Shown here piece after piece: positions 10,540 to 43,939 of a stretch of DNA of 64,000 nt. The position numbers and the translations under genes were made by a program. Numbering within the stretch: the first letter of the stretch is position 1; every line of letters starts with the position of its first letter. The notes below the pieces were generated by a model, which was given only the letters and a program-made list of their open reading frames with translations, was not told where the DNA came from and did not search any database. The stretch is from Epithemia pelagica (Eukaryota > Protista > Bacillariophyta): assembly GCA_946965045.2 (NCBI GenBank), contig OX337229.1, positions 5,456,001 to 5,520,000 of the forward strand, given 5' to 3'.

Positions 10540-10606
10540 TTAGCGTAGGATTTAGGATTAGTCTTAGTCCAAACTTTAGTTACTCCTACAATAAATCCAG
10601 CCAGTC

Positions 10607-10780
10607 TGTATAAATCCTGCCACTACACGCTACAACACGGTGTATACGGCGTGCAACAAGTGGCTAGACCAGAATTATGACTAGAAAACTAGATGCGTAG
10701 CAGCATATGTAGGCGATGCATATTCGCCAATATGCGACCATGTATCCGCCAATATGCGACCTGTTGGCGGGATTTATTCA
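10607..10780 (-). repeat. 3' LTR of Copia element 1
   Basis: Identical by eye to 13276-13449; TGTATAAATCC...GGATTTATTCA ends. Confidence 0.95.
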
Positions 10781-10934
10781 GTCCCCGCGAGCTAGATCGG
10801 AAGCATTTCGACTAGGTCGCCCACGACTTGTTTCAGCAGAGGCCGGTCCATCAGGACTATTTTTTCTCAATTAAGAGGGGTGTCTATTCGGACAATAAAA
10901 GAGGGGTGTGAGGACAATGAATTCGATCATGTAA

Positions 10935-13275: not shown

Positions 13276-13449
13276 TGTATAAATCCTGCCACTACACGCT
13301 ACAACACGGTGTATACGGCGTGCAACAAGTGGCTAGACCAGAATTATGACTAGAAAACTAGATGCGTAGCAGCATATGTAGGCGATGCATATTCGCCAAT
13401 ATGCGACCATGTATCCGCCAATATGCGACCTGTTGGCGGGATTTATTCA
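13276..13449 (-). repeat. 5' LTR of Copia element 1
   Basis: Identical by eye to 10607-10780. Confidence 0.95.
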
Positions 13450-20891: not shown

Positions 20892-21449
20892 TACTCCTAC
20901 GAGATTCGCTTCACCATACATTTTCCTGAAGTAAAATGAATTGCCCCACATTGACAAGATGTTCTCGTAAGGTTACCTCGCACTCCTACCGATGAACCTT
21001 TCACCATGACGTGGAGGCGCTTCCCCTTTCTGTACGAGAAGTAAAAGTACTAGGACTACGAGTAGATCAAACTGCACGGCTTCCTTATGATAAGTCTATT
21101 ATGTTGCCACCATCACTGCTGCTTGTTGTCGTTGTTATAGGGGATTGTTTCACTCGGCCGAAAAGAGGTTGCGTTTGGCGTCGTGTCGCGGCACAGGATT
21201 GTCTCGTTCCGCCAAAACAAATTGATAAGTGTTGAGTTTGTTGTAGAACCGTAGAAATGAAAGAAATGGAGAGCAGTTGATTGTTGCGTTTGGTGTCATT
21301 GTCGTGGTCCCAAATTGTTGAAACGACGAGTTGATTGTAATGATTGGGACAAGAACTGCTATGCGAGGCCAAAACCAGTTGATTGTGTAATTCCTGGTAT
21401 CTGTGATCATGGTTGTGGGTATTGTATCATCATCACCATCCGATGGATT

Positions 21450-22191
21450 TAGCAGAGCTCTCATTGAGAATTCAGAAGAGTTGGGTAAAAGGCTCGCTGA
21501 GCCGACAATCGATCACCAACCGATACAACAATCCTCCACGGGTCAGAGAAGAGTTGCAAGTCGAGGTCCGCCGTGGGTAGGGGCAGTCGGTCCACTGATA
21601 AGAGGTTAGTCTTAAGATGTGATGAAAGGTGATATTAATGATTGTGAGACAATTACTAACTAAGGTGGTTGATGGTGCCGAAGTCCTGGCTCTTGTATAC
21701 GGCCATGGATCTGGTGTGATAGGTCCTCACTGGTTGGAGTAGACCGGCATTGGTGTATATTGAATGTATAGGGTGATGGATAACATGTATGGGATGCGAC
21801 AGCTCTTGCTTTGTCGTGGTATAAGTCTCGTGCTGGGCGCGTTGCTGTTTGCATTCTTGGATTTGTGGGAACAGAGATATGGTCTCGCGTGATCGTGATT
21901 CGTGCTTTGATTATATAGACCGTTAGGTCGAGTCGTGGATGCGCGTACTCGGATAATCAAGGCGCGCACTCGATTGTTTTGGGCGCGCACGTGTTGGGCT
22001 ATAGTTAATATCCGAGTGGTCGCCGATAACACGTGAATGCGAGCATGCCATGGCCAAATTTATAGTTTCGCGAGCATGCCGACATTCCTTTCTCACTTTT
22101 AGGAAAATGTCATCGGATGCCATAAAATACTAACATCATTCGATGTGTTGTAGATTCCACCACCACCTAGTTAAAGGTGAGAATCCTAACA
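21450..22191 (-). repeat. 3' LTR of Copia element 2 (terminal 8 bp missing)
   Basis: Near-identical to 26073-26815, roughly ten differences by eye. Confidence 0.92.
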
Positions 22192-22205
22192 CTCCCCACA
22201 ATTTG

Positions 22206-25200
22206 TCAAGTGAGGATTGTTATTTTCCTCGTCATGCTTCTGAACGTTTCCTCCCCAGAAGAATATGATCTTGAACGTGGTCCATACTTTCGAGAATTTC
22301 CAATGCTTACTGACAATGTATCCTGGACGCTCTCATAGGGATATCTCACCAGGCAATAAGTAATCAGTTCATCATTCTTCAGTTGGTAGGTCTTGTCGGT
22401 GCCCTTTGAGCTATGCTCCCCAGGTGCCTTCTTCATCCAAACATTGGGATCTGCTTTAGTTGGTGACAAATCCATATCAAGTGGGATGTCAAAGAAACAG
22501 TCACACCAACATGCTCCTGAAGATTTTAATCCTTTTGATGCCCTGTGTTTAATCAAGATGTGACCTGATTCCTTGAGTTCTTGTCTTGCAACTATCAAGA
22601 TCTTCTCCCCAGATAAAGCTTCCGGGTCGTGTGCATTTCCAACTTTTGCTCCCCATATATCCATATCATTGAGAATCCCAAGACAGGTGGTTGTATGGAA
22701 GTTGTGAATGGAAGAAGTACACAAAAAGATTGCCTCAACCGGTTCTTTGGTAAAAGCCTCGTCTGTGATGAGAAGTGCTGGGCGACTATCATCATGTTTT
22801 ACAAGATGGATTCGAATCTTGTTCTTGTGATACTCTTCTGGTGATGCATTTATCATTTCCCTTCTTTTGAACTGAGCTTGAACGCAATCCTTGATTTTTG
22901 TGAGGGATTGGATCTGTGAAACCTGAAAGAGCTCAACTTCGGTAGTGTCGTGCCACTTTCTTTTACCACGTTGCTTGTCTAACAAAACAACTAATTCTTC
23001 ATTTGTCTTTGAAACTTGATAACCAAACTTGTACTTGATGGAACGACAGACTTGCTTGATTCTTGACTGCTGTTTGGCAGCTTTAACAAGGCATTTACTG
23101 GTCTTGACAAAATGCTTGAGATGTTTCCATCCAAGTTCATTCAATAGATCATGTTTCTTGGCATAGGCATCATTTACCACGAGTGACGGAGGCTCATAGA
23201 TCATCGCCCCAGTCTCCCAATCAACAAGTATATTACAGTGACTTCTTTTGTAGTCAGGATTGTTGCTAATACTTGACGGTTCTTGATCTGCAACAACGTC
23301 TCTGAACTGGAAAACGTCATCTTCAGTTGCCTGTGCTTGGTTGTCCTGTTTGATGTATTCCATATGTTGACGGTATGAAATTATCTTGTCAATGTCGGAA
23401 ATGGATTTGCAGAAAGTGTACTTGATATAGTCTTCTTGCTTGAGAGCATCTTGTTCTAAATCAACAATGCATCTGATAAGACATGGTTGTGGTTGCTCCC
23501 CATTATATGGTTGTGGTTGCTCCCCATTTTCCTCTGGATCATAAACAAGGAAAGGTTGTCCAAAAGTGTTATCACATTTGATCATAGGCATTTGCGTGGA
23601 TGGATCTTCACCTTTGCTACCAACGAAAATGGGTTTATTTGGAAGCGACTCCTCCCCTGAAGAGGTATCCACACAAAGGTTGCTGGGTGGCGTGGGTGCA
23701 TCATGAAGAATGGCAGAGTAACAAAGGGTTTGAGTGTCCAGAGACAAAGTATCACCAATAGGAGGGGCAAAAACAAGCCAGTAGCCAAGTGTCGTGACAA
23801 AAGAGGGAGGGTAGGGACGGTAGGGACGGTGGGAGAGGGCATATGATTCGGTAAAGTAGGGGGCCTTGTCCCAGATAAGGAAGAAAAGTGGGTGGGTAAT
23901 GCCGGGTGGGCGACCATTGAGGATCTCAAGAGGGATATGGCCCGAAACGGTCACGACGTATGTTGTCCTCTTAACGGTCTGATAACGGTTCTCAGCCATG
24001 TTCTGATCTTGGAGGTATGGTTTGGAACAGTATTCTCCAAGCAGGGGTGTGAAGAAGGAAGGCGTATCAGGTCCATGATCGTAAGGTAAATCCAAGAGAA
24101 GGTTGAGGTTACAGACAACACGATTGGTATACTTCCCAAAAGCATCATGCGGATTGTTGCCATCATTTTCAACAGTCCTTGAAGAAGGTGCCGTATCTTG
24201 CATGGGATCAAGATACCAATGATTATAGCCAGTCAATTGATTGTCACCGGAGAAAGTAGACATGCGAGAGAGCAGATGTCGAGATATCTCAACTTTCTGT
24301 TTACAGTTGTTGTTCTCGAGACAATCATTAGGGATGGATGTTGCCTTGATATTGGACACCAAATTAGCAAGATCAGATGTTGGATGATTGACATCAATAT
24401 TGGTCACAACTTGTGGAACCAACCGGGTAATCAGATCAAAGAAATTATCTTGATGGTCTTGGGAATCATCTTGAATCATGTCGTCAATCCATGCACGACC
24501 AGGGTCGGGATCAGGTTCCGGATCAATGTCAAGAGTATGCGTCTGTTCCATGCATGCAGTTGTTGATGACGCATTCTGGGTAGACTTGTTGTACGCAATG
24601 ATTACTTGACGACTATTGTCGTTGAGTTTACTCCACAGATCTCTTGGAAGACTGATCTTTGGACGAAGCGAAGATGATTCCTTGGTCTTCACGTTGGTTC
24701 TCTTAATCATGCGGTGTTTTTCTTTGGGTGATAGATCTTTGATATCAAAATCTTGATCATATTGAAAGTCGCATTGCTTGGTATGCTTAAGTCGGTTAGA
24801 CTTTGGTGCTCGAGTTGCTTGGTCATGATCATATGCGGCATCAAGGAGAAGACGGAAATATGATTGATAACAAAGTGTCTTTGCACCAGACAAGATGTTG
24901 ACTTGTCGTAAATCAGGTACCTTTTCAACGGCTTTCATCAGGAAGGTCATCCTAGTGTAGTGGCCAGGAATGTGATCAAACATTGATACCAGATTGTCGA
25001 GGAGATGGAACTGGTGTTGAAAGTGTAGGAGAAACTGGTAGGTTGTGCCGTGCCATGAATCATCGAGACAAAGATTGGAGATGTAGTTGTTAAGACGTAG
25101 CACCTCTCTTTTTGCTAAATGAAATGACGAAATCCAACCTTGGTTCAGGCGAAGCTTGGTGAAGTCTGCATTGATTCTCCAATGATCGTAATTGGCCTTG

Positions 25201-25568
25201 GTGAGGTTCAACCAGGTAGAACGGGATATATCACACTGCTGCAGGGTTGAGGTTTGTTCTCGTGACCAATATGTTATGATCTTCAGTTGATGCCTTGTAT
25301 ATGTCTACAGGTCCATGGTCTTGTTCCCATACTTGTATTGTCCAAGGTCCTTGATATTCTTTTCTGGATTGACTGCAAGATAGTCGATGACATTCAGAAT
25401 GTGTTCGAAACCACTACGTTTTATCCATTGATGAAGGGCTTGAGCTTGTTCTTCATCACATTCAAATAGATACTGGGTGATATGATTGAACACTTGTGTA
25501 TCTGATATGTCAGGCGGTACTGAGTCGTCAGAAGGAAGAGAAGGTGTCTTGGGGTATGTTGGATCCAT
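22206..25568 (-). pseudogene. Decayed Copia gag-pol (gag, integrase and RT remnants)
   Basis: Gag (LDDSWHGTT, AVEKVPDLRQV), integrase (QNMAENRYQTVK) and RT (YKFGYQV, DIWGAKVGNA, ADPNVWMKK) remnants. No YVDD and no RNase H. Gag N-terminus is a separate ORF at 25305-25568. Confidence 0.82.
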
Positions 25569-26064
25569 GGTAGTATATGGTTGGTTCGTTGTTTATTTAA
25601 TGTGTGGTGTGATCTGAACCCGGATGTACCACGTGTGTGCCACGTATGTAAGTACCCGGATGTGTGTTGTGCTTGGAAACCGGATGTGAGGAACTCGGTT
25701 TTGTCTCTGGTTTGTTGTGGAAACTACTTAAAGTTACTTATCCTTGGTCACTTCCGGACTCGTTGCGGTGATCGAGTTGAACCGGGGAGTCAGGAATAGT
25801 AGTAGCTTCCTCGTCTTGCTCGTAGTCCTCAACAAAGTACTGGTCAGGTGAGTATTGGGAAGGTAGTTGCACGGAGTCCTGGTCCAGCTTGAGGTCCTGG
25901 AATAGGAGAGGGTTGGTGACCCTAGCCTCAGCCAGGCTGGCCCTGTTGTTGGGTTGGGTAGTTTTGTCCTCTAACTCTTGTTTGTTGGGGTAGCTCAATC
26001 TGTAATGGGTGTAGATGGGTAAGTAAGGTATCCAATGCAACTGCAGGGCAATGAGCGATGAGAC

Positions 26065-26815
26065 TGTTAATCTAGCAGAACTCTCATTGAGAATTCAGAA
26101 GAGTTGGGTAAAAGGCTCGCTGAGCCGACAATCGAATCACCAACCGATACAACAATCCTCCACGGGTCAGAGAAGAGTTGCAAGTCGAAGTCCGCCGTGG
26201 GTGGGGGCAGTCGGTCCACTGATAAGAGGTTAGTCTTAAGATGTGATGAAAGGTGATATTAATGATTGTGAGACAATTACTAACTAAGGTGGTTGATGGT
26301 GCCGAAGTCCTGGCTCTTGTATACGGCCATGGATCTGGTGTGATAGGTCCTCACTGGTTGGAGTAGACCGGCATTGGTGTATATTGAATGTATAGGGTGA
26401 TAGATAACATTTATGGGATGCGACAGCTCTTGCTTTGTCGTGGTATAAGTCTCGTGCTGGGCGCGTTGCTGTTTGCATTCTTGGATTTGTGGGAACAGAG
26501 ATATGGTCTCGCGTGATCGTGATTCGTGCTTTGATTATATAGACCGTTAGGTCGAGTCGTGGATGCGCGTACTCGGATAATCAAGGCGCGCACTCGATTG
26601 TTTTGGGCGCGCACGTGTTGGGCCATAGTTAATATCCGAGTGGTCGCCGATAACACGTGAATGCGAGCATGCCATGGCCAAATTTATAGTTTCGCGAGCA
26701 TGCCGACATTCCTTTCTCACTTTTAGGAAAATGTCATCGGATGCCATAAAATACTAACATCAGTCGATGTGTTGTAGATTCCACCACCACCTAGTTAAAG
26801 GTGAGAATCCTAACA
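26065..26815 (-). repeat. 5' LTR of Copia element 2 (751 bp)
   Basis: TGTTAATC...CCTAACA ends; matches 21450-22191. Confidence 0.92.
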
Positions 26816-28619
26816 GGATTGGTCATTGAGGTTACCTGTCGTCCAGTTGTAGCGTCGTAGGTCGTTGTTGTTCCGTTTGTCAACGTGCCAAACAGTTTTC
26901 CGCTCACATGGCTCTTCGACCACTGCCACCACAGCTCCACTTTGTCCACTCCTTCTTCCACTCGAACTATGTTGTCGGAAGGAGCCGCACCACCGGCACC
27001 AGCATTGGCGGCGGCGGCGGTAAGAAGCAGTCCTTCCACATATGGTTGCGTGTTTGTTGTTTCGTCGAACCAAACTTTTGTTGCGTAAGAACCACCAATC
27101 CGATGAGGCTTTGATTTGGTGGGTTCGGGCCAAGGAAAGATGAGAAGTTGATTGTTGCATGCGGATGGAAGATAAGTGAATTGCTGTATTCATTCCATCC
27201 AGTCTCGTCGTCTTCTCACGGTCACTTCCTTCGTTGCGGTTGCCGAGATTCTTGTCATGTTTGTGCGTCGGAATCCTCCAGTTGATTGCCATGTGTCCTT
27301 GCTGCTGCTCTCCTTCACCTCATCCATCCATTTTGGAGCTTCCATTGTCGTCCCTCCTTGCAATCATGGTTCATTCCATCTTTATCCGACTCCAATCTTG
27401 ATCCTCTCGTTGCTTCCTTCCAACCTCAAAATGGAAGGTCTTCTAAATCTTGCCGTAGGTCGATGAAACTAGCCAACTCATCCCTTCCCGTCCATTCCAT
27501 CACGGTACACATAAAGATCAAGCTTCCTGGATGTTCAGAGGAGTGCTAGGACCTTTCGTTGGAGGTGCACAGCGGTCTTCATTGTCCATGGTGGTGATAT
27601 GCAGTGCAAAATGACCGTAGTGCTCTTCCTACGAAGCTAGAATCACTATAGAGAAAACAGTGGGGGCCTGAAAAGCACGGGCAACTGAGCGCCAACATAT
27701 CGATTGATGGAGCTCGTACGAGTACAACATACAACAATCAACCAATGAGAAGGAGAATCACGAATCACGAATCATTAAAATGAGGTGGACGGGAGACAGG
27801 ATTCGAAATTCGAAAAGGCGCGGTCTTGTTTTGCGATTGGGATTCTACTGTAAAACATATACTTAAAATCTTAAATTAAAAACGCACTTAAACGTGCGCT
27901 CATAACCCATTTTATTTTAGGTTTGAGGCCAAAATTTGTCCGAGCCAACAGCCAACCCCTCGTCTCACGAACACTTCTCGTAAACACAAACCTAGTCGTA
28001 GAGTATATATTTATATGAACGTATATCATATAAGCCTTCCCCCCCCTAAGAAATCGTCCGTTCGACAGATGGAGCAATAGCAGCAACAAGTCCTCCTCGT
28101 CGTCGTTCATGGTTCTTACAAACAACGCCCTACTCAAACAAGGAAAGAAAGGCGAAACAACGATACCCTGTATTCGACACGGAGAGAGGTACGTTCAACG
28201 CCAAAGGTGCAGGTGGAGCCCCAACTAGGTAGCCATTGGCTTCTTGGGGGAACAGGGGAGAAAGAAGGCGCGAAAATGCTTATGTAGATAACGCGAAATG
28301 AATGTTCTATATCATGCGTTGAGTACGGCGTGCGCTGTGCCGCATCGTACCGCCCCGGTCAAGAAGGGACCGACGGACGAACGCTGATCGAGTCATCGCA
28401 CCCAAAGGAGTTCCTGGAAGAAGAGAGTGTGTTGGGACGGTCTTTGGGAAGACTGTCCCAACAAAGTTGCAACAATCATAAATTGTTGGAAAGAAGATTT
28501 GCGAAGGTCATCGTTGGATTTGATCACCCTACGGTTCTTTACATTCTTCTTTCGCTTCGGTTTTTCTCTTCTCCCTGTTCGACCGTGCCATCCACCTCAT
28601 CCTTGTCATCGTTTTCGTG

Positions 28620-30950
28620 ATGTTTGAGTGGGCAAGTACTCCGGATTCTTCGCCTTCTGTGGGATCGTCAGGTGAGTCTACTGTTTCTGTGACCGGGGGG
28701 GGACCCTTCGTTCGGGTTCTCTCTTCGGTGTTGTTCGTATCGAACAAGATACCTTTGATGCGTCTTGTCGTGGTGTCATCGGGGCAGGGCAGCGAGTGTG
28801 CATTCGTACGGATTGTTCCGTCGCCGCACATGCTGCAAAGAAGCAAGAGTGGAGTAAGTTGGTTGGTGACGACACCTCGGGCATATTTATTCGGGGTGTT
28901 AGTGACTCTTCGAGTTCCGAGGCTTCGGATGTTCTCTTTTGTCAACCGGTTCTTCAAGGCAACTGTATTCGCACTCTGGATTGGAATGAAATGGAGCTAA
29001 GCCCGCGCTCACTTGAGAGTTGGCAAGCCACCTTTGCATCCCTCAAGCATGCGGCCTCCGAGTCGGGTGAGGGTGTGGATCTATCTACGGCAACTAAAGT
29101 CATGGAAAACACAAAGTCTGAAGTGAAGTTCGTAGCCATGACTCCCAATCCCAAACGCAAGAAACGAGGTTCTCAAGTTTTAGTTGAAACGGTTACAAGT
29201 GAAGATGAGGAAGATATGGGAGTCAAGGTACCCTCAGTTGCTACTCCACAGAAGAGGAGGGTGGTTCCTTGGAAGGCTGTACCAGAAGACATTGGGACTG
29301 AACAGCCTACACCTAGTGTCAAGGTGTTGCAAAGTGGCGCGTGGTCTAACTTAGTTACCAATGTGAATACCTTGCGTGAGGAGCATGAAAAGGAAGGACA
29401 GGAGCGAGACGTTCTGGAAGCAACGGTGGATGTGGAAATCGAAAAGCTGCATGTGAAGCTTTCACTGATCCATGCCTTGTTGGGAGAAAGATCCGAGGAG
29501 TTTGGCACTCAGTCTGCATTCGAAGCATTGACTCATTGCATGACGACTGTGCGTGCCTTACAAGGCTTGGTGGCCAAGCGTCTGGAAGCTCCATTGGATT
29601 CTGGTTTCTTGGGCAGGAACAGGCGGTGGCTTCATCAAAGACGTTGGTGCAAGAGCGATTGGATGAATTCTTTGCTGATCACAGCGATTTTCGGAAGCAA
29701 TTTGTAAATCCAACCTTGCAATTGCTTGCACGATCCACGTCGAACAAAAGTGATCCAGGAGGGAAGTGGGCGGAACTGTTTGCCGAGCTCACTTCGAGGA
29801 TCGAGAGAGTGGAACAACAAGGCAATGCGAGTCAGCCAGCGCAGTCTGTGTCGGGCAATACAAGAGTCCCGGGGGTTTCGTTTGGATGGCCCATTAGTTC
29901 TGCTTCAACTGGTGGATGGTCCACTCAATCGTACGGAGGAACACAGGTGAATGGGCAAAGTGCCGACCAAATGCAGTGGATACAGGGAGAGTTTCAAAGG
30001 TTGAAAGAGGAAATGAACACTCTCAAGTCGGGTATGAAGGACCTGCAAGAACAGGCTGAATCTGATGCCATTTTTGTTGGGTCGATAGTGTTTCCGTCTC
30101 GCGGGTTCTGTGTATCTTGGATGGCGCGCCATGCAGTAGAAACCGACCCCCATGTGTTTGTGGATGCGGTATCGTTGTTGTCGCTGGCCACATCGGACGT
30201 GAGTCTAGACGAAGAACGCGCGGCGAATCTGCGGGCAACGACAGCCAAGGTCCGTGATAAGACACCTTATCACACCGCTTACATCGCCTCGTTTAACTTG
30301 GAGGTACCCCCGTTGCTGGGCAAAGGCTCGGACCAGTCTTTGACCACCAATTCGAGGGCATTGGGTGGAGTGCCGAAATTCGAAGATTTCCATCGCCGTC
30401 GGGTCGCGAGGGAATTCATCAGCGGATTCTGGATCACGTCAAGGATGGACGTAGGACTCTGGAGCAAGCGATTGGAGACCTGTTTGCTTTTGGAACGGAG
30501 CCAGCCAGCGTCGCCCATGAGTTGCTACTACAGAGCAAAACATTTTGGGATGACTTGTGCCATTGGATCGTTCGCTACCATCAGCAGGTCCAAGCAGAAA
30601 GTGAAGCGAGCTGTCAGGAAGTGTGGATTCTCATCTCACACTGTGTCCGAGCAGTCTTTCGGAGTCTGCGAGAAGCAATGGCGCCAGGACGGGCAACGAA
30701 CACTCCTGCCGGGATGCTTTTGGGCACCTTGCGCGCCCACGAAGTTATGAAGGAATATAGGCAGGCAGATTTCAGCGGGCATCCGAAGATAGCGCTCATT
30801 CTGCATGAACATCTGATTCGGTTTGCCACGCCCAGGTCAAAGTTCACGGCTCTCAAGACTGGGCTAGAGGAACGCATGGACAAGCTGCAGCGGTCTGTGA
30901 ATTCAGCTGTGGCGGCCACCAACAAGAGCGGAGGAAAGAAGAGTGCGTGA
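28620..30950 (+). pseudogene. ORF1 (gag-like) of the YR retrotransposon, frameshifted
   Basis: Successive frames (28617, 28796, 29536, 30522) join into one product with a C-x10-C-x4-C-x4-H knuckle, coiled coil and IFLHEHL-like end. About three frameshifts. Confidence 0.65.
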
Positions 30951-30974
30951 GAAGGAAGGTATGGGACGTCAAAT

Positions 30975-33900
30975 ATGAGCAGAAAAAGAAGGATGGTGGA
31001 CGAGATGGGAGGAGATGCGGCGATGAATGGCGAGAAAGTTGGAGATGGGATGGAGATTGGTTTCGCCAAGGATAATTGTTACGTAGAAAGTGTTTCGCTT
31101 TGCAACTCGCAAAATGGAGTGGAGGAGCGAAAGATTTCTCGCTTGCAAGTAGGACAAGGCACGTGTCGTATTGGGTTGGCGAGTGGAGGAACGCCCTTTT
31201 GGTTTTGGGCCGTTTCCTCCCTGGGTCAGATATTGTGGATTGACACTCCACCGGAACGATTGGATAGCGGAGAAACGGGTTCGGAAGACTGGAGCAGGTT
31301 AGCGATAGCAAGAGAAGAAAGACTCACAAAAAACCGAGGGTCCAAGAAGGCCAGGGTATCATATGTCGTCCCACAATCCTGGGATAAGCGTGCTGATGTG
31401 GATCTTGTCTTTTTTGATGGAGGAATGGCGCCCGGTCCTGGGCACCCGGTTTGGAAGATGGGAGCGGTGAAAGTAGTTTGTTGGATCGGAGGAAGAAAAG
31501 GTGCGGGGCCGTTTGATAAGGCAAGATGGAATACGACTGTGTTGAGGCTGCCGCATGATGAGTTGGGCAGTGTGACGACTCAGGTGTCCATGATCCATGT
31601 GGCGGAGCGCAACGATGGAACCACCGGCCAACAGTTCGTTGATTGTTGGAGAAATTTTGTCGAGAGTGGTCTGAGGAAAACCACAATGAGTGGCGTTGTC
31701 GATTGTACGGTCCATGGGCGGCAATGTAAGACTCCACCACGATATGAACCAGGCGTTTACGGGAGAACTTTGATGGATCGAAAGTTGAATTGGAAGACGG
31801 ATCATGACCGGGAGCACGTTTTGCCCTGTGTATTTTCAAGAACTGATTGGGTACAAAGGAAGCTATCCCCACAAGAATTGGCAATAGCTCTTGATTTCCC
31901 TGCCGATTTGCACAAGCGAGCGACGGCTGAGGAACTGGGTTGTTGGATCCATGAACTGAAGGTTCCATTCAAGTGTCGAGTCCAAGTTGCTTTATCGCTA
32001 AGGTCATGGTTGAGAGAAGAGGAAGAAGAGGCAGACGATAGGAGGATGAAACGAGAAAGAGAGAAAGGAGGAGAGAGGATGGGCCACGAAACTCTCTACA
32101 GAAAAGGAGAAGAAGATTCCGAGGAGTTGCGAATGACGGAAACCGAAGCTTTGTTTTTGATTCCTGACAGCGATGAGGGAGTTGGATCTCTGAATGTAGA
32201 AGAGCGACGTGAGGATAGAAACCTCAAGGCAACGAAAGCGGACGACGCGGCCATTCCAACTTACCTTTGGGATGACCGGATTTGTGCCAAACTGGGGATT
32301 CAAGATGTGAAAAAACAAGCGCAATGTGTTAAAGCACTAGAGGTCATTCGTGGTGGTGCTCTCAGATATTGGAAGCGACTCGTATGTTCAGACTTCTGGC
32401 GTTGGTGGCGATACCAACGATTTGATGACGACTGTAGCAATGATCAGAGTCTAAAGGAACGGACAATCACCGCTGGATTGAGTGCTCTAGCCCACGCGTC
32501 GGAGGCGTCCTGGTGGGACTGGGACAAGGGATCGTCTCCTTTCTTCTGGAGAATCCCAGATGCTCAGTGGCTTCAAGAAATGCGGGATGGTGTCTCACCA
32601 ATGTGGATAGGAGACCCACCGGCATATAGAAGACGACAGAGAGCGAATCCAGATGAGAAGCAAAGAGCGTTTGAAACAAAGAAAATTACCAAGGTCCGAC
32701 GGCGTGGATACATTGCCCCAAGGAGTGGGATTAAATCACTTACAAGTTTCTTTTCGGTCCCCAAGGGCGAAAATGATATTTGCATGGTCTATGATGAGAC
32801 TAAGAGTGGACTCAATGATGCTTTATTCGCGCCTTGGTTTGGACTGGGGAATGTCACGTCAATGTTGAGGACGGTAGAATCAAAAACGTGGTCAGCCGAC
32901 AACGATTTCGGCGAAATGTTTTTGAATTTCTGGCTGCATCCCGATTTGAGGGCATACACGGGAATTGACATTACCGATTTATTCCCAGACAAACTTAAGG
33001 AGAAGTTTGGCCGTACGCGACTTTGGGAGGCATGGACACGTTGTGCAATGGGGCTAACTACATCACCTTACCAGGCCACCCAAAATGCACAACGTGTTAA
33101 ACGATTGATATTTGGAGACAGGTTAGATTCGTCAAATATCTTCGGTTGGGTGGATGTGCGTTTGAACTTACCAGGTGATGCGGATTATGATCCGAGTTTG
33201 CCTTGGATAAGTAAGATTCACGACAATGGTGATATTGCAGCCGACGTTCATCCATATGTGGATGATTTGAGAGAGACTGCTCCTTCAGAGGAGGAGGCAT
33301 GCTTGGCAGCAAGCAAGATGGCAAAGGGTGCGGCATTCTATGGACTGCAGGATGCGGCACGGAAAAGGCGTCCACCCAGTAAGACTCCTGGTGCCTGGGC
33401 TGGAGCCGTTGTAGGAACCGACAAAAAGGGACAGGTTTTTAAGACAGTCTCTCAGGAACGTTGGAAGAAAACAAGAGGTCACATTTCAACGTTGAGAAAG
33501 TGGGCCAAGACAGACCAGAAGATTGACCGAAAAGAGCTTGAGCGGGTGAGAGGATTCCTGGTGTATGTGTCGTTGACCTTTGAAACAATGGTGCCTTACC
33601 TGAAAGGAATCCATCACACACTAGAGTCTTGGCAAGACGATCGCGATGCCGATGGATGGCGACTGCCTGACAAAGATCGGCGAAAGCGGAAATATAGCGA
33701 GTTGGCTAATTCAAAGGGGCCCCCAGGGAAGTTGCTCAATCTCCAAGGTTCAAAAGCAATGTAGCAGCGTTGTCTGAGCTGACAAAAGAGGAGACACCGC
33801 CAAAAATACAGGCTCGCCCGACCGCAGGAGCGAAGGTGGCGATTGTATTTGGAGACGCATCCGGAGAAGGGTTTGGCTCCTCACTGTGGATGTATGGCGC

Positions 33901-34780
33901 CAATACAGTAGAAACGGAGCATGGGCAGTGGACGAGAGAGTATGGCTCTCGCTCATCGAACTATCGCGAATTGTACAACCTTGTTCTCCGATTGGAAGCA
34001 TTGATTGAAGATGGCACAATTCCGAGAGGTGACGAAGTACTTGTCTTCACAGACAATTCGACGGCAGAATCAGCCTTTTACAAAGGAACTTCTTCTTCGC
34101 GGCTGCTGTTTGAGCTTGTACTTAGAACAAAACGTTTGGAAATGCTGGGCAAGGTATTTGTGCGGGTAATTTGGGTTGCAGGAACCCGAATGATTGAGCA
34201 AGGGACCGATGGCTTGTCCCGCGGAGATCTGATGACGGGCGTGATGGCAGGTGGGAACATGCTGATGTATGTACCGCTCAACAAGACGGCCGAAGAGAGA
34301 CAAGCAGGGCTGGTGGAATGGGCGAAAGGTGTTGCGCCAACAATGAACTGGAAAGAACTTGAAGCGAAGGATTGGCTTGACCGAGCTTTCGAGGATGATA
34401 ACTTCATATGGATGCCTCCTCCAGCCATTGCCGATGTTGCTGTGGATCAGTTGCGCGAAGCACGACACATCCGCACACGAACTGGTCATATATTTATCTG
34501 CCCTGCCTTGATGACAAACAGATGGAGAAAGAAATTGGGAAAAGTGGCGGATTGCGTTTTTACTGTCCCGGTCGGAAGTGAATTGTGGAGTAAATCTCAA
34601 CATGAACCGTTGATTGTTGCTTTTGTTTGTCCTTTTCTGCACAGGCGTCCGTGGCAAGTCAAACAGGCTAAACCACTATTGGACCAAATGGACAGGGAAT
34701 TGCAGGGGCTGTGGACATCCGGTGCTTCCGCTGTGCGGGATTGTTTGTGCAAACTTTGGTTGTACAAGGGGGACGAGTAA
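30975..34780 (+). pseudogene. ORF2: MTase-like N-terminus, reverse transcriptase and RNase H, one frameshift near 33720
   Basis: RT motifs FFSVPKG, MVYD, DFGEMFLNF, MGLTTSPY and YVDD. RNase H motifs FGDASGEGFG, SSNYRELYN, FTDNSTAE and DGLSRG. Confidence 0.9.
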
Positions 34781-36191
34781 GACGTGCGATGGTATTTGGC
34801 ATGCCAAATGTTATCGACAATTGATGGAAGACAAGTTCCCAGTATATGAACCGGGAGATCTTGACGATGCATTGTTGGATAATGAATTGAATTGTGAGAT
34901 GGTGGATGATGAGGCTAGATTTCAGGAGGCGAGAATCGGAGACCACTTGATGTGCACTTTTCAGTGCGATGACTACAGCTTCTTTAATTTGCAAGGCCGA
35001 TACCCCAATACGGCAAAGGAAGCAGACAAGTTGCTCTTGCTGTGTATCAGAAGAGCCACGTTGGATGCCTTTTGGGCAAGGGAGCAAGCAACGGTGGACA
35101 AGAATTGGAGGGAAATGAAGAGCTTGATTGCGACGGGCGAAGCCGTGGGGATGGAACGTCCCTTGCCACTGAGAGGTCCATGTCCACCAAGGGACGAACA
35201 GGGTCTCAATGTAGCCTGCTTGATGCTGATGAAGACGTTGAATCAAGGCCAAAATGCAAGGCATATTCAATTCGAATCGGCTCGCAAGGTTAGGTTGGTC
35301 GTCTCCAATTTCTATCATACTCTGCCAGGTGGAACAGGGCTCTCAACGGTTGGGCAAGGAGAAAGAGGTGGATTGTTTTTTAGTGCCAGTACTACCAACA
35401 GCCACTGGTATAAGAGATTCATGACCGGTTGCCATTGAAGAATGGGGGATGTGTGGATTCCCGATCAGGCAACTACGGTGGATGAGATCAAGGCCGGTCT
35501 GGAAATCTTGGAGGAAGAATGGCAAGGTGGGGCAAAGGGTGCACGGAAATCAGAAATAGCGTTGACAGGAGCCTTGGTGATTGCTGGATTTGTTGCGGCG
35601 CTTCGAGGAGAGGCAATCCCACAGATTGACGTCGGACTCATGCGGAAGTATTGGCAGGAGGGTCTGGACTATCCGCGAAAGAGGCATGTCCCTGTGGCCC
35701 TTGCTGGAAGGTTTAAGCAGACGAATGGGACGCACAGAATTTACATCCACCCCTTAGCTGATGAAACTGCGTCGGGGATCAAGGTCCGGTTGTGGTTTGA
35801 AAGAGCAATACGATGCTTGAACGACAGCAAGATAGTCTCGGGTCCGATGTTTCGTGTCGTCAAAAGAAAGGGACAAATCGCTCGAGCATCAGTGGGGGAC
35901 TTGGATGTCCTGTTCCATGATTTATGGAAGCGGATTCAACACAGACGACCCCAGCTTATTTCTGAATCTACAAAGATAGAAGAAGTATACAGTGTGAGGA
36001 GATCGTTGAGACGAGGAGCGACGACAGAAGCCCAGAACAGGGCGATGCCCACAGAGGTGTTGGAGGCCAACAACAGGTGGAGGAAACACTTACGTGGAAG
36101 AGGCGTCTTGCCCAACATGTCAATGGTGGAGCGATACTCTGACGCTAAAGCGTCGGTTGAGACGTTGGTACGATTTTCAGAATTGATGTAA
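34614..36191 (+). pseudogene. ORF3: tyrosine recombinase with N-terminal Cys/His finger, in-frame TGA at 35436-35438
   Basis: CANFGC...C..WHAKCY finger; AALRGE, GRFK, RSLRRGATT, NNRWR and MVERY motifs. Two ORFs in the same frame separated by one stop. Confidence 0.88.
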
Positions 36192-36833
36192 GAAGTAACA
36201 AAAATGAAGTGGAGGAGAGGATACGGATGAAGATTGCAAAAAAGGAACGACCACACGGGGTGAAGACTCGACTGTACTACCTAGTGGTGCATGTCCAGGT
36301 CGCTTGTTGTCTGTCAGCTTGACTGTGGAAGAGGAGGAGGTTGTTCTCCGAGTTGGTTGCTTGGGGCTGGCACTCCACAGCAGCTGATTACTGTACTAAC
36401 TCCAGATCAAGCTATAAAGTTAGTTCGTCTCACATTTTTATACTATAGTACGAATTTTATTGTACGACCGGGAAGTAGTAATTACCAAAAATTCGTGCGA
36501 ATCGCGCGAAACCGAGCGGGGCGAGCCAACCAAGGGGGAAGCGCACCACGAAAAGGAAACCAACGGAACGAGAAAGGAAACGAAACCAAACCAAGAACGA
36601 CCATGAGGATGTGCAGAAGACAAGGAAGAATAAGAAAGACTGTGTGAGAGTGGGAAATGCAACAATCAAACTGGGAAAATTCAAGACAGGTACTTACAGT
36701 AGTGACTACCGTGGACGAATGCTGACTGACTGTGGAACAAGAAACACAAAGATGAGAAAAACGAAGCACAAACAGAAACCAAGCAAGAAATGACTCACCA
36801 ATCAAACATCTACTCCATTCATGGCTATCCCAT

Positions 36834-39800
36834 TCATTCCACCTTTTCTTTGTTCTTCTTCTTCTTGTCCATATTGGACACAGAACGAGCCATGGTAGGT
36901 TGGGCCATGAACTGATATGGTTGTTGGGGCATCGTCGTTGCTGGCATCATTCCATTCATGGCCATCCCATTCATTCCACCTTGTGTCATCATGGGTTGCA
37001 TGGGTTGTTGCATGAAATTAAAGAATGGTTGTTGCGGCATGAACATTTGTTGTTGTTGTGGTGGTTGCACCATCATGGTGCTCGGTTGGTGGAACATCAT
37101 GCCAGGTTGTTGGATCATCATGCCAGGTTGTTGGATGATCATGCTCGGTTGCTGCATCATCATGCCAGGTTGTTGCATGGAGAACCCAAAAGATGGAGCA
37201 CCGAGGACAGCCTGTGGCTGAGCCTTCGGTTTTGGGGACACATCCGAAGCAAAAGAAGACGAAGATGGAGTACTTTTCGGAGGAGGAGGTGGCGGAGTTT
37301 GTTTTTTGTCCGCTTCGGGTTTGGATTCCTCGTCCACACTCAAATGACGTGCCACAGTAGGATTGGGTGGCGTCGTTGGTTCGCCTTGTTTCGTGGTTGG
37401 TGGTTCCGATGGTTCGGTGGCGTTGTTGTTGGTGGTCGACGATACACTACCAGCAGCTGACGACGCGGGAAGAGCAGGCATTTTTGAATCTGAAGGAAAT
37501 TAAAAGACAAGGTGAGAGACCAATCACAACAAACAGCAATCAAACATAAAACTTACCAGACTCGTCCCCATTGTACCAGTTCGCCTTGATTGCCTTTGCG
37601 AACGTCTTGGAGGTGAACTCCTGGTACTTGAAACTGGCACGATCCGTTGCGTGCCGGCCAAACTTGTTCACAACAAGTTGGGGAACGCCGGATTCGGCCA
37701 CGTTCGAAATTGCCGTGCGACGCCCAGTCCGGGAAGTAGCCTTCTGCCACTTTTCGTGTCCGCACCTCTTGTAGATGATCTTCGCGTTCTGATTCGCCCA
37801 ATTTTTGCCCAAGTGGCCAGACGGGCGCATTGGCAGAGGCGGGTTTTCTCCCAACTTGCGAGCCTTCTCGTACTCTTCCATCGCTGACTTGCTCCTGTCA
37901 GGAACCATTTTTGTCCCAGCCCACCACGTGTCTGTCGAAGGACGTGCTTTGCGTTCCTTGTCCGAGGCAATATTGAGAAAAAGTGGGCCATCCCAGTCGG
38001 GTGGCAAGGCGCGATTGATCCAGTGGCGCAAAACTTTGTACGTACTCCAATCGTCATCAGGGTTGTCGATAACGATATTCACGACCATCTCCTCCTCGTC
38101 ACGCAACGTGGGTTTCGCGAGCGAGAGAGTCGATGTCTTTTCTCGCTCGCACTCTTTCATCTTGTAGGCCGGCAGGCCTGCTAACTCTCCATACTCTTCC
38201 GGAAGGGCATCAATGTGTACAAGTTCTATTAGTTTAATACAAAGAGTCTGAACAGAAAACACGAGTGACACAGGTGAGATTCGTCCCAACAATCCAACAG
38301 AGAGTGTTAGCAATCGCATGCGACTTACTTCCATGCCGCGTCCGCCGAAATCACGGCTCATTTTGTACACAACGGTACGCAGGCAGTCATGTGGGTTCTT
38401 CTTCCAATCGAAGGGGGGATCCGCTTGCGTGCGGAGCATCTCCTCGTCTTTCACATTGACGAGTGCTTTGTTAGGACGACGGCCATAATCCGGGCGACGG
38501 TTGGCTTCCAATCTGAATTTTTCAACCAGTTGGGCCAAAAAAGATCCTTTGACAGATTGCATGTCGGGGACCGAATATTCGAGACCATTGCTTCGAAAAA
38601 TAGCTTGATGCAGCCTGGTTGGTAAATCTCACCTTTTTTTGTTTTGAGCGTAGGTATGAAGACTGACATCGCAAGGTTGAGTACATTCTCTTTCTCGGGA
38701 AGCTTCGTACCGCGAAGCATGAGAAAAAGACGAAGCGTGAACTTCTTCGGATTGGATGGATCCGGAAGAAGGTCCACCAAGATGTTCAGATCTTCGTGAT
38801 CCTTCAGAGAGGTAAGCAGTCTCTCGAAGGACCTGACCTTGTCCTTTTCGTATTGCTTGGTGTTCAAAGAGGAGTTTCTCAACTCTTTTGTGTTTGGTCC
38901 GAGAGCATTCTTGCTCAGTTGCGCGTACATCGACAGTGCTGCAAGGTCATTTGGATTCTCTCGAAGGCTTGGGATGGAATTCTCTGTGTCAGAGACCATC
39001 ATTATTTCGTTGGTTGCCTCGTCGACGACCAAATCTGTTCTTGTCGACGCCGCGATGGAAATCACACGGAGAGATGGCGACTTGAGATTCGAGGGAGGAA
39101 GCTGCGTCATCAAGGCACGGAGTGCAGTCGTGGGCCGACGGTATCCAAGGGGAATCAATGGCGGCAGATCATCATCGTCTTCCGTTGAGAGTGCAGCACT
39201 GTAACAAACAACAATCAACCAGTTAGATGTGACCCAACATCTACCTCTGCGACAGACAAACACAACAATACGATGCTTACCTGAGCGGAGGATCGGCTAA
39301 GGAAGGACCACCAGAGTTGGTTCGAGCGGCAACAGTGGAAGGTGGAGGTGGAAGAACTGGGTGCTGCTGAGGATCTCCATTTCGTGCCCTGAGAACGACC
39401 AAGGGAGTTAGCGAACCCAACAAACAAGCAAAAGAGCAACGAACAAAGCAACAAGCAAACAACTTACATCTCCAACGAGTTGGATTGTTGATGACTGGTG
39501 GTGGTGGTGGTGGAAGCCATGGTTTCCGGAGGGTGGCCCAAACTGGAATCACCACCAGGTCTTTGTTCCAATGGAGGGCGGCGTCTGAGAACGACACAAC
39601 AATCAACAAGTTAGCGAAGAATGACAAGGGTGCAACAATCAACAAACAGAAAGGAAGGCAACAACAAGCTTACCTTGGATCAGGTTGAATGGTGATGGTG
39701 ATGGAGGAAGGGATAGGAGCGACATCTTCCAATGCCGACGGTGGACGCTTCTTGCCCGTCATCGTCGTCGACGGTGGAGGTACGACGTTTTCCTTGTTCT

Positions 39801-39855
39801 CGACGGTGGTGGAGGTCGTAGCTGCCGCTCGGCGGCTCTGATTTCGGGTCACCAT
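36834..39855 (-). pseudogene. Multi-exon DUF3504/Crypton-type tyrosine recombinase with P/Q/M-rich tail (one apparent frameshift near 38600)
   Basis: KKGEIYQPG, FGGRGME, LGKN and TSRTGRRTAIS...GRH...FKY. In-frame GTAAGT...CAG introns at 38248-38328 and 37490-37556. The 5' exon structure upstream of about 39200 is uncertain. Confidence 0.72.
37080..37180 (-). repeat. Imperfect 21-nt tandem repeat encoding QQP[G/S]MM[M/I/F]
   Basis: CATCATGCCAGGTTGTTGGAT-like unit repeated about five times. Confidence 0.8.
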
Positions 39856-40017
39856 GATGATCTTCCTCTTGTTGCGGCTTTTCGATTCAACAATCCGAGG
39901 AAAAATGAAGAGTGAGACGATTCAAACGATCCGTTGGACCTGGGAACGCTAAGTGCGACCAGGAAGATTTGAACGCAAAAGGAAGACCGCAATGGCCGAA
40001 AATGGTCTTCCAGACCG

Positions 40018-40482
40018 TCAAACGGCCTCAAAAACACAGCAATCAAACAAAAAAACATACCATCGATACCCCCTTTCCAGCATCCATGGATCACTGGTCA
40101 AGCTATGCACTTCTACGTTCCGTAGAAACTCAAGATAGCTCTTTCGGTACAAACGACCCTTCCACTCCACAGCATTTGGGTCACTAAAGACAAACTCAAG
40201 ACTCCCTCCAGAGGAATCCGTGGAATCCGATGACTCTGAGTCCTCAGAATCATCATCAGTGGATTCATTGGTGAGATCTATGATCTCCTTGGTCAGATCT
40301 ACGACCTCCTCCATGGTCAAAGCAACAATCAATCTTCCAGATTCCGTGACACAAAAGAGGTCACCATGATCCGGTGCGCCTAAGTACGCCGCCCAACGCA
40401 TGGTTTGATAATACTTAGTATAAGTAACTTTTCTATTTATGAATCGATTTGTCGTACCATGATAAAAATGTTTATGCGACAT
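40018..40482 (-). CDS. Hypothetical protein inside the Crypton-like element
   Basis: ATG-initiated 154-aa ORF with an acidic/Ser tract; no recognised domain. Confidence 0.35.
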   Translation of the reverse strand: MSHKHFYHGTTNRFINRKVTYTKYYQTMRWAAYLGAPDHGDLFCVTESGRLIVALTMEEVVDLTKEIIDLTNESTDDDSEDSESSDSTDSSGGSLEFVFSDPNAVEWKGRLYRKSYLEFLRNVEVHSLTSDPWMLERGYRWYVFLFDCCVFEAV

Positions 40483-40918
40483 GTCTAAGCGTGTGCTAGT
40501 TTGTTAAATCAACCCGGGTGAGACTCACTAACTTTATAGCTTGATCGGGAGTAAGTTTCCTAATTCCCCATGTCTGGCCGTCCCTTCTCGTCGGGCGCCC
40601 TACTTGTCGGGAGAATTCCTCGTCGGGAACACTTCTCGTCGGGCATGCGCCCTCCTCGTCGTGTTCCCTCCTCGTCATTCTACCCTCCGCGCCGGGCGAC
40701 CCTCCTCAAAAGGGACTACCGTATTTTCCGGATTCCTGGACCCCAGGAATGTACATGATTCAGGGCGGGGGGTCCAGTACTCCGGCATTTTTATTTTAAG
40801 ATTCCATATCGTAGTACTATTAACATCACAGTTCTTTTTCGCGCCTTTTCTGACCTCATCCGGATCGGAGGTAGGAGTCCTGCTGAGAACTCAATGTTGT
40901 TGGCATTTGTTGTTGACC

Positions 40919-42256
40919 ATGGAAGACCTTGACGATGATGTGGATGGGGTGATACGCATCCCAGCAACCCCTCGTGTTTTCATCCCTGTCAAAAGGAAGC
41001 TTGACATCTGCAACAAACTCCGTAGAGGTCGTAGACTGGATTCCAAGTTCTCCCTAAAGAAACTTGCTCGAGAAGAAGATGTTCGTCCTCACCAGATTCG
41101 GCAATGGATGAAGCAATTGCCACTCTTACAGGCTTCAAGTGATTCAAAGAAGTCTAAATTCTCCATTCATCAGGGGAGGCCTACCACATTTCCAAAAGCA
41201 GATGACTTGATTGACAAGATCAAGGAACTGAGAGAGACTGGCATGCCTGTTTCAACCAATATGGCTGTCCTCATGGCCTCTCAGATGGACGCAGGCTTTC
41301 GTCGCAAAAGTTCAGCTGCCAAATATTCCTTGGTGAGGAGAATCCTTCGAGCCCATGGGATAGTTATTAGGGCAAAGACTCATGAAGCACAAACTCACCC
41401 ACGTGAAAAGATGGAGGAAGCTAAACAGTTTGTGCAGTCTGTACTCCCTTTGGTAAGACAGAGTTGCCGCGACAAAAATTTCATTGTTAACATGGATCAG
41501 ACCCCTGTTTTCTTTTCAATGACCCCAAACAGCACTTTGGAAACCCTAGGAGCGAGGTCTATAAATATCAGGGCTTCAAGTGGAAGCACTATGAGGGTTA
41601 CATTGGCAGTCTTCGTAACAGCCAATGGTGAGACGCTGCCTTCCTACATGATCTTCAAGGGGAAGGCAAATGGGAGAATCAACAGGGAGTTTACTGATGA
41701 TTCCTACCAATATCCCAAAGATTGTTTCTTCAATGTTCAACCAAAGGCCTGGATGGATGAACGCTGTTGTCTGGATTGGGTTGACCGAATCGTCAAGCCA
41801 TGGGCGTCGAAAGCTCCAGAAGGAATCATACCATTGATGTTCCTCGACTCTTATAAGTGCCACTTGCAACAATCAGTGAGAAATGCCATAGAAGACCTTG
41901 GAGTTGAGGTGGAATACATCCCAGGGGGGTGTACTTCATTATGCCAACCTGTGGATGTCGGCATAAACAAGCCCCTCAAGAACAGGATCAGGGCGTCCTG
42001 GGAACAATTCATGTTGGAAGAAGGACTTGCCCAGAGTGTCACCAAGCCTCCAAGTCGTGCAACAATTGCAAAATGGTGTGATTTGGCTATCAAAGAACTG
42101 GATGGTGATATTGTTAGGAATGCATGGAGACATTCAGATTATTCTTATTTCCCTACAGAAGAGTCGACAGCAACAACAGGAGGAACAACAACTACAGCTG
42201 CACTGGAAGATCTAATGGATGAACTTAGTCTTTCAAGTGATAGTATTGATCTATAA
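40919..42256 (+). CDS. pogo transposase (HTH, CENP-B HTH, DDE_1; DD35D)
   Basis: NMDQTP, MFLDSYKCH and CQPVDVGINKPLK, with 35 residues between the last two Asp. Uninterrupted 445-aa ORF. Confidence 0.93.
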   Translation: MEDLDDDVDGVIRIPATPRVFIPVKRKLDICNKLRRGRRLDSKFSLKKLAREEDVRPHQIRQWMKQLPLLQASSDSKKSKFSIHQGRPTTFPKADDLIDKIKELRETGMPVSTNMAVLMASQMDAGFRRKSSAAKYSLVRRILRAHGIVIRAKTHEAQTHPREKMEEAKQFVQSVLPLVRQSCRDKNFIVNMDQTPVFFSMTPNSTLETLGARSINIRASSGSTMRVTLAVFVTANGETLPSYMIFKGKANGRINREFTDDSYQYPKDCFFNVQPKAWMDERCCLDWVDRIVKPWASKAPEGIIPLMFLDSYKCHLQQSVRNAIEDLGVEVEYIPGGCTSLCQPVDVGINKPLKNRIRASWEQFMLEEGLAQSVTKPPSRATIAKWCDLAIKELDGDIVRNAWRHSDYSYFPTEESTATTGGTTTTAALEDLMDELSLSSDSIDL

Positions 42257-42718
42257 AGTCACTTCATTTCTGCTTTTCTTCTGGTTCTTGTGTGCCTCTT
42301 CATCATCTGGTATAGTAGCACTGGGTTGTCGCTTCCTCTGTGGAGTATGCACCAATTCCACCAATGCAGCACGACAAACACCTTTACCACGATGACTCTT
42401 CTCCCGTTCTGATGCAAATTCTGAGTCCTTCAAGAACTCTGTCACTTGGGCAAGCTTTCCATCATAAGTATTAGCTTGCTTCTTCATGTACCTTGGTAGG
42501 AACCCGACTCTGCAGCGATCTACTCCATCAGTTACCCAATATACTGCCAACGCCATCTCTTCTTGTCCACCAATGGACACTTGAACCTTTCTGATGCGTA
42601 CCAGACTGTCATGCTGGAGGACAACACCACAAACAGAGTGTTCTTCACAGCATCTTCCATTCGAAGAAGCTTCAATACCAACAATATTCACAGTTTCTCC
42701 AGTTTGAGAGACACCCAT
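42251..42718 (-). CDS. Accessory protein of the pogo element, possibly HIRAN-like
   Basis: 155-aa ORF within the TIRs, convergent with the transposase. GRCCEEHSVCG and ALAVYWV...RVGFLPR. Confidence 0.65.
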   Translation of the reverse strand: MGVSQTGETVNIVGIEASSNGRCCEEHSVCGVVLQHDSLVRIRKVQVSIGGQEEMALAVYWVTDGVDRCRVGFLPRYMKKQANTYDGKLAQVTEFLKDSEFASEREKSHRGKGVCRAALVELVHTPQRKRQPSATIPDDEEAHKNQKKSRNEVTL

Positions 42719-43380
42719 GCTACGAGCGACACACCGTTGGAAAGCTCGTAATATCACGAATCACGTGATATGCCTAAAAACTACGTATGTTATTCCGTTC
42801 AAAACTTAGAGAGTCATGTACATGAAAGGAGGTAGGGGGGTCCAGGACTATAGGGGAACCAGGAATCCGGAAAATACGGTAGACATAGGGAATTATTAAT
42901 ACTACTGCGAAGAGATTTCGAGAGTACAGACTCACTTGTGAGTAAATGGAGAATGGCTCACTTTTTGGAAACACGCTCGCCCACAGAAGACGCGTACTGT
43001 TCAGAATCTGGAGTTCTGGCAACTCCGGATCCCTCCCTAAACGGGATTGATGGGTGGGGGGCCTATACCCCCCAGTGTTGGTTAAGTACATAATTATAAT
43101 GTTTATCAATTATCAATGAGCAAGTGACGCAGGAACGACGAGGTTGCGATGTGAGGAAAAGGGAGGATCAAGTACCTTTTGTCTCACTGGTTAGTTGTTG
43201 GGAATTCAGTAGTGTTCACGGTCTTAAACATATTTTGTAATTTTGGGGCAATTACGTTTAAGATTGCGCTACAGATATGTTTGTGTAATTCAGTAGAATC
43301 CCATTAGGTCATCGTTGGATTTGATCACCCTACGGTCTATGGTTCTTTACATTCTTCTTTCGCCCACCCGCCCGCCCGGT

Positions 43381-43939
43381 AAGACTCGACTGTACTACCT
43401 AGTGGTGCATGTCCAGGTCGCTTGTTGTCTGTCAGCTTTACTGTGGAAGAGGAGGAGGTTGTTCTCCGAGTTGGTTGCTTGGGGCTGGCACTCCACAGCA
43501 GCTGATTACTGTACTACTGCGAAGAGATTTCGAAAGTACAGACTCACTTGTGAGTAAATGGAGAATGGCTCACTTTTTGGAAGCACGCTCGCCCACAGAA
43601 GACGCGTACTGTTCAGAATCTGGAGTTCTGGCAACGCGGCGCGATTCCGGATCCCTCCCTAAACGGGATTGATGGGTGGGGTGGGGGGCCTATACCCCCC
43701 CAGTGTTGGTTAAGTACATAATTATAATGTTTATCAATTATCAATGAGCAAGTGACGCAGGAACGACGAGGTTGCGATGTGAGGAAAAGGGAGGATCAAG
43801 TACCTTTTGTCTCACTGGTTAGTTGTTGGGAATTCAGTAGTGTTCACGGTCTTAAACATAATATTTTGTAATTTTGGGGCAATTACGTTTAAGATTGCGC
43901 TACAGATATGTTTGTGTAATTCAGTACAAAATCCCATTA
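43381..43939 (+). repeat. Terminal B2 repeat of the YR retrotransposon
   Basis: Direct repeat of 36263-36398 joined to 42900-43306, with small indels. Confidence 0.92.

Follow-up and report, generated by a model that had tools for sequence, protein, structure and literature searches.

The window analyzed here, a stretch of 64,000 nucleotides from the diatom Epithemia pelagica (assembly GCA_946965045.2, contig OX337229.1, positions 5,456,001 to 5,520,000), contains a DNA transposon with a gene for a tyrosine recombinase (YR) of the Crypton type, the components of which are listed in Table 1. It is inserted, with its gene-sense on the minus strand, in one of two copies of a repeat of a Ngaro-type retroelement. 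A pogo/Tc2-type transposon is in turn inserted in the element, whose own length, pogo excluded, is about 4.34 kb. The empty site lies in the other copy of the host repeat and reads TACTA a single time, whereas the filled copy reads TACTA on both sides of the element. When the two halves of the filled copy are rejoined, 526 of 549 columns are identical to the intact one. A sequence-only reading of the window had proposed 36400-40551 as a unit bounded by 34-bp terminal inverted repeats (TIRs) and flanked by TAA, with the block 36399-42899 between TACTA repeats as an alternative boundary. The alternative is exact, as the empty site and related loci confirm. The 34-bp repeat also exists (36400-36433 and 40518-40551, 31 of 34 positions matched): a 25-mer probe matches at these two places alone, with 0 matches expected by chance, and TAA does stand beside both copies, at 36397-36399 and 40552-40554. 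However, the left TAA takes two of its three letters from TACTA, the right one is internal to the element, and the empty site contains no TAA. The specific claim of a YR transposon bounded by TIRs and TAA is wrong.

Five loci with related YRs (L001-L005), all from one assembly, delimit the hairpin end. Their homology to the window copy passes the inner arm, crosses the pogo insertion point and stops at the same end as the window element. A conserved segment of ~190 nt, which is not unique host DNA, adjoins the inner arm in 5/5 of them, and since the homology of all related copies extends this ~190 bp further, the 34-bp repeats are not the element termini. Read in gene sense, the left ends of the window copy and of L001-L005 all begin with TAG and the right ends all finish with TAG. 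The number of base pairs common to both ends is 5 in the window copy and L001, 4 in L003, and 3 in L002, L004, and L005; TAG comprises the sole letters always shared, and three letters suffice. The target homology is one-sided, the element core being constant and the host letters beyond TAG variable. The short terminal direct repeats thus match the target, in place of a true target-site duplication, and their fixed part is TAG.

Table 1. Features of the YR element and of the transposon nested in it (window coordinates; a dot marks features given without strand)
Feature	Position	Strand	Basis or remark
Whole YR DNA element, including nested pogo	36399-42899	-	Filled versus empty site; ends common to L001-L005
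Direct repeat TACTA (gene-sense TAGTA), 3' end	36394-36398	.	Family-wide core TAG = 36396-36398
Direct repeat TACTA, 5' (hairpin) end	42900-42904	.	End comparison and empty site
Empty-site control in second copy of host Ngaro-type repeat	43512-43516	.	Repeat comparison within window
Terminal arm B' (formerly left TIR)	36399-36433	-	Repeat search, fold
Internal arm B (formerly right TIR), complement of B'	40518-40551	-	Repeat search, fold, co-variation
Internal core, pairing with junction core; conserved T.T mismatch and 1-nt bulge; holds the supposed TAA duplication	40552-40560	-	
Internal arm A', complement of terminal arm A	40561-40574	-	Family comparison, fold
Body of the rod hairpin; purine loops GAGGA/GACGA recur; apex 40641-40652	40575-40718	-	Pogo breaks rod at 40717-40718
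Terminal arm A (42882-42895) and junction core letters (42896-42899)	42882-42899	-	Family comparison, fold
Short upstream exon or open reading frame; (V/I)IDL motifs (SIM-like); acidic/Ser stretch	40062-40317	-	Conserved in five copies, common GT donor
YR exon 1 of 881-codon model	39674-39855	-	Begins in the model with ATG at 39855 (real start uncertain); checked for GT donor and phase
YR exon, low complexity	39468-39584	-	Gene model
YR exon, low complexity	39281-39388	-	Gene model
YR exon; holds the conserved N-terminal region and, at 38340, the first catalytic Arg	38329-39198	-	22-nt deletion at 38604/38605
YR catalytic exon: K 38139, RxxR 37731/37722, H 37653, Y 37626	37557-38247	-	
Last YR exon, Pro/Gln/Met-rich tail	36834-37489	-	
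Pogo/Tc2-type DDE_1 transposon, separate element, TA duplication (40717-40718, 42880-42881)	40719-42879	+	TIR pair; DDE_1 E=1e-19

The recombinase gene and its product

The predicted YR gene has canonical GT-AG introns and in-phase, stop-free exons, with a single break at 38604; the donor of exon 1 is also present in L001 and L002b. As the sequence-only reading had stated, a spliced minus-strand gene carries the YR residues R, RxxR, H, and Y, but the gene is not intact. Because the matches of all homologues change frame alike at 38604, and because contigs of sequencing runs X1 and X2 carry 22 extra letters at this position (run X3 agrees with the window), the window copy is frameshifted upstream of the catalytic domain. 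An intron at 38514-38633 that would bypass the frameshift was rejected, as L001 and four distant homologues are colinear across this region. With this frameshift in the gene and the pogo inside the rod, the window copy is probably inactive. Run X3 also contains a variant devoid of 37772-37935, and the difference between X1/X2 and X3 reflects either alleles or sister copies.

The queries of the protein searches were single exons or the natural open reading frame (ORF) 37543-38562, in which an intron of 81 nt is read through in frame. Pfam reports no domain match for the YR exons of the window. Among the 83 relatives that the searches returned are proteins of diatoms, namely Cylindrotheca fusiformis and, from a transcriptome, Entomoneis paludosa; no named CryptonS protein was among the relatives returned. 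In the numbering of this ORF, R278, R281, H304, and Y313 are at least 90% conserved across the aligned homologues, and Arg replaces the first His of the HxxR motif in at least 90% of them. A profile alignment places RxxR, H, and Y on the HxxR, H, and Y of XerA (weak alone, E 0.4), while Pfam reports Phage_integrase in 10 of 75 homologues and DUF3504, the YR type of CryptonA, in two of 75, the latter weakly (best E 0.011). The best Atlas structure match is a DUF3504 cluster (TM 0.63). The AlphaFold model of the ORF reaches a mean predicted local distance difference test score of 86, being low solely over the 27 residues of the read-through intron. Its comparison with known structures returns YRs at all top ranks, and it is closer to Cre (Z 17.2, root-mean-square deviation 2.8 over 196 residues) than to IntI (Z 11.5). 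The encoded protein is thus a tyrosine recombinase with the catalytic tetrad and a Cre fold, and the earlier assignment of a Crypton-type YR in a diatom holds. The YR encoded by the Ngaro-type element around it is not related to this protein (probability 0.7%). A tblastn search of phages with the YR gave no matches, viral contigs returned neither relatives of the protein nor the hairpin pattern, and the relative P0020, used as query, returned itself alone.

The short exon upstream of the model, containing motifs that resemble SUMO-interacting motifs (SIMs), may be joined to the YR ORF. The Entomoneis YR P0088 possesses a similar PIDLT motif at its N-terminus, and these SIM-like motifs therefore suggest a SUMO-dependent targeting. 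Between the exon and the YR ATG, a non-coding motif (39945-40020) is strongly conserved in the five family copies compared; it is possibly an internal promoter or a splicing signal.

A palindrome split between the ends and the interior

The true end of the element is a rod hairpin of ~190 nt, and the order of parts in gene sense is host-TA/G-core-A-rod-A'-core'-B-YR gene-B'-TA/G-host, the slash marking the crossover. When the two ends meet they make a B'-core-A joint, and the internal A'-core'-B segment is its reverse complement; the inner arm thus belongs to an internal copy of the circle junction in inverted orientation. The earlier view of the repeats as recombinase-binding arms is plausible, except that the crossover core is TA/G at the true ends and not TAA. 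Once the ends are joined, a single rod or palindrome of about 270 nt runs through the 34-bp arms and across the crossover, with fold z-scores of -6 to -26. The fold of the window copy has 94 paired positions, and its mismatches comprise 23 purine-purine (21 of them G.A) versus 3 pyrimidine-pyrimidine oppositions (p 9e-5). The mismatches form recurrent loops, in which a G-C pair is flanked on each side by two G.A pairs. Tandem sheared G.A pairs are stable in both DNA and RNA, and the opposite strand would carry T.C mismatches at these positions. Since nearly all mismatches of the gene-sense strand are purine-purine, this strand is favored.

Among six copies, compensatory pairs number 24, versus 11±2 after shuffling (maximum 18) and at most 4 when the alignment is slid. 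They lie mainly in B/B', whose partners are 4 kb apart, and in the core with A, some being inside the core. A separate miniature inverted-repeat transposable element with a YR unit nested in it was rejected, given that the rod, the core, and the arms co-vary and in the family invariably occur together. An Rfam search returned nothing above chance.

Family elements are 4.1-4.6 kb long, and the same end architecture extends to distant relatives. L007 (41% protein identity) exhibits it with 26:3 purine-purine versus pyrimidine-pyrimidine mismatches, as do L008 and L009 (26% identity, another sample), with a single 935-codon ORF, and L130 (25% identity, a third sample), with mismatch classes of 33:0. 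In L134 and L135 (22% identity) the arm pair is present and the contigs begin at the expected rod position. The copies of the family retain introns, and the strand that folds is also the one that is spliced. In L002, a non-autonomous mini-element of 382 bp (4970-5351) and a full copy (5347-9932) meet head to tail in a natural B'-TAG-core-A joint. Read depth at both element ends far exceeds that of the body, which therefore implies many short copies. In L005, another copy starts 57 bp past the element (L005:9872-9973) in TAG-rich DNA at a contig end, and in L130 (234-2364) genes with SET/AWS and PHD_NSD domains, either host genes or cargo, adjoin the rod end.

The rod apex module (CGAGGAGGGC-loop-GCCCGACGAG) also occurs in more than 120 metagenome contigs (L010-L129). 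None of them encodes the YR of the element, and they mostly contain palindromes that resemble bacterial repetitive extragenic palindromic (REP) sequences; 82 of 124 matches fall inside one REP-like palindrome starting with TGTCAT, similar to the CGTC/TGTC-tagged REPs (PMC3733652). The tandem-G.A apex module seems to be reused in bacterial repeats.

Possible modes of transposition and relation to known systems

The element falls within the broad definition of Cryptons: it has a YR, no reverse transcriptase (RT) or DDE transposase of its own, and short direct repeats. Cryptons have been described with neither TIRs nor long repeats (PMC3212892; PMC13465315). The two termini of the element are not inverted copies of each other, but each has an internal inverted partner. 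Crypton terminal repeats are 4-6 bp long and mostly TATGG in CryptonS, from which CryptonS-1_PTri of Phaeodactylum departs (4671 bp, CTGTAAG ends) (PMC3212892). The element shares with CryptonS, compared by description only, the single intron-bearing YR gene, the lack of RT and DDE, the short direct end repeats, the diatom host, and a similar length. In contrast, its ends read TAG(TA) instead of TATGG, TAG alone is fixed within repeats of 3-5 bp, and it bears the conserved split palindrome; it also differs from CryptonF, as no Pfam match to GCR1_C was found in its exons or in full-length homologues. A literature search found neither a description of such hairpin ends nor support for the sub-terminal inverted repeats that had been attributed to some Cryptons. 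The element is therefore of the Crypton type, with an end structure not found described in the literature. The transposition mechanism of Cryptons is still without experimental demonstration (PMC13565253). The family supplies exact ends and a predicted recombination substrate.

Two single-stranded systems of bacteria offer parallels. In CTX-phage attP(+), two inverted sites separated by 90 bp are functional only once they pair in a single strand (PMC4246890), and the strand of integron attC that recombines is enriched in purines where it is unpaired (PMC5027507). Similar to these substrates of XerC/D and IntI, the element has two inverted YR-type sites, here spaced by about 150 nt and potentially able to pair in a single strand, together with unpaired core features, one-sided micro-homology, and a purine-rich favored strand. 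Unlike them, it is a transposon of a eukaryote and encodes a YR of its own, and a mechanism that in the bacterial systems was demonstrated by experiment is here proposed from sequence.

We favor, with moderate confidence, the interpretation of the element as a Crypton-type YR DNA transposon of diatoms that excises and integrates as folded single-stranded DNA. This proposal builds on its boundaries, the recombinase fold, the insertion at TAG with 3-5 bp common to both ends, and the internal inverted copy of the junction. One strand of the element, exposed for instance during replication, would fold by pairing of A with A' and of B with B', which would draw both ends together on their internal complement as on a splint. 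The YR would then cleave TA/G at both ends, reseal the host strand, and free a folded single-stranded circle, the junction of which would constitute a duplex recombination site. A single strand exchange with a double-stranded target at TA/G, completed by replication, would yield the insertion, as for CTX-phage attP(+) and integron attC. The tandem G.A loops would stabilize the purine-rich strand while avoiding a perfect palindrome in duplex DNA. The retained introns disfavor an intermediate in the form of spliced RNA from the folding strand. More tentatively, these elements may represent a diatom-wide class of eukaryotic YR transposons that move as a folded single strand with a built-in splint on a tandem-G.A rod. 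To our knowledge, YR recombination of folded single-stranded sites is known in bacteria only; if the proposal is true, the class would be a eukaryotic counterpart of CTX-phage or integron chemistry, and its replicative route would explain how a YR DNA element gains copies. Genome engineers, too, could take an interest in a small eukaryotic YR that inserts at a core of 3 bp.

Several points weigh against single-stranded transposition. DNA energy parameters favor the sense strand by just 3-10 kcal/mol. The six copies are related, hence the shuffle test overstates the significance of the co-variation, which could also reflect fold-back gene conversion, or proteins that bind duplex DNA symmetrically. 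The purine bias of L009 (14:6) is not significant (p=0.12), no rod was seen in L132 (20% identity), and L007 has a longer partner core and a left repeat that reads TAA instead of TAG. No circle or single-stranded intermediate was observed, and no junction was among the matches listed, which are assembled contigs. Lastly, the element encodes no helicase or HUH protein for making single strands.

A classical double-stranded Crypton is a possible alternative, although we consider it the less probable one. The element would then form a duplex circle and integrate at a short core, tolerating heterology as the Tn1549 integrase does; the internal inverted site would be an accessory YR binding site or an operator immediately upstream of the promoter, and the rod would have a separate role, such as circle replication origin or promoter control. 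Duplex circles are the standard Crypton model (PMC3212892; PMC13565253), and circles are used by Starships (10.64898/2026.09.21.753150). Moreover, B lies directly upstream of an AT-rich, promoter-like stretch, and the reconstructed targets read TA-N6-TA, which resembles a symmetric YR site, in 4/7 cases (p about 2e-4, small sample). However, a duplex circle leaves unexplained the complementarity of the junction and internal cores, the continuous stem across the joint, and the strand-specific purine loops, and the left end carries no host-derived coupling sequences.

We regard as improbable that the fold acts as RNA, either as a structured non-coding RNA (regulatory, or guiding the donor joint like a bridge RNA) or as the internal complementary region of a DIRS-like element with RT supplied in trans. 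The layout does equal that region, with the outer ends repeated in inverted form and side by side internally, and the element shares with DIRS-1-type retroelements a YR and a trinucleotide junction core (PMC7192593). Under the folded-strand proposal, it would share single-stranded intermediates with them as well. RNA energies prefer the sense strand by 17-28 kcal/mol, and the window copy is inserted in a Ngaro-type retroelement. In contrast to DIRS-1-type elements, it keeps introns, it has no gag, RT, RNase H, or long inverted terminal repeats, and a purine-loop rod separates its end from the internal site. Our low rating follows from the persistence of introns on the folding strand and from the Entomoneis transcript, which lacks the rod (its 5' end is possibly incomplete); Rfam gave no match, and the YR is not related to that of the Ngaro host.

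The 36400-40551 unit, or a Harbinger shell with a YR, landed in a small separate element can hardly be upheld: the repeats and their TAA flanks give a superficial likeness to PIF/Harbinger, and MarCry-1_FO is an earlier example of a YR in a DDE shell (PMC3212892), but the rod adjoins the inner arm in all five related loci and co-varies with the arms, the repeat does not lie at the termini, the empty site shows no duplication of TAA, and no Harbinger DDE or Myb protein was found, the sole DDE in the block being that of the nested pogo, which other family copies lack. An FLP/FRT-type inversion between the two sites was also judged unlikely, as their cores differ in length and sequence.

Neighboring mobile elements

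The nested pogo contains a second, convergent ORF of 168 residues (42251-42757, minus strand) without Pfam match. At 40769-40785, a further copy of its TIR occurs, short and in inverted orientation. The host Ngaro-type retroelement covers 28505-43929 and has split direct repeats, the first being 28505-28555 and 43306-43363, and the second 36263-36398 plus 42905-43298, which corresponds to 43381-43929. It comprises an RNase H-like ORF (33770-34780) and its own YR-like ORF (35442-36191).

Elsewhere in the window, the region 19366-27718 is another nested mobile-element cluster, with large inverted repeats of 453 nt (19366-19818 and 27266-27718), a hairpin with 182-nt arms (20645-21077), and a direct repeat of 300 nt (21512 and 26136), resembling long terminal repeats, around an ORF of 1001 residues. 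Further small transposons are found at 9049-10540, with a 36-nt TIR pair (9049-9084 and 10505-10540), and at 10606-13449, with a perfect direct repeat of 175 nt (10606 and 13275).

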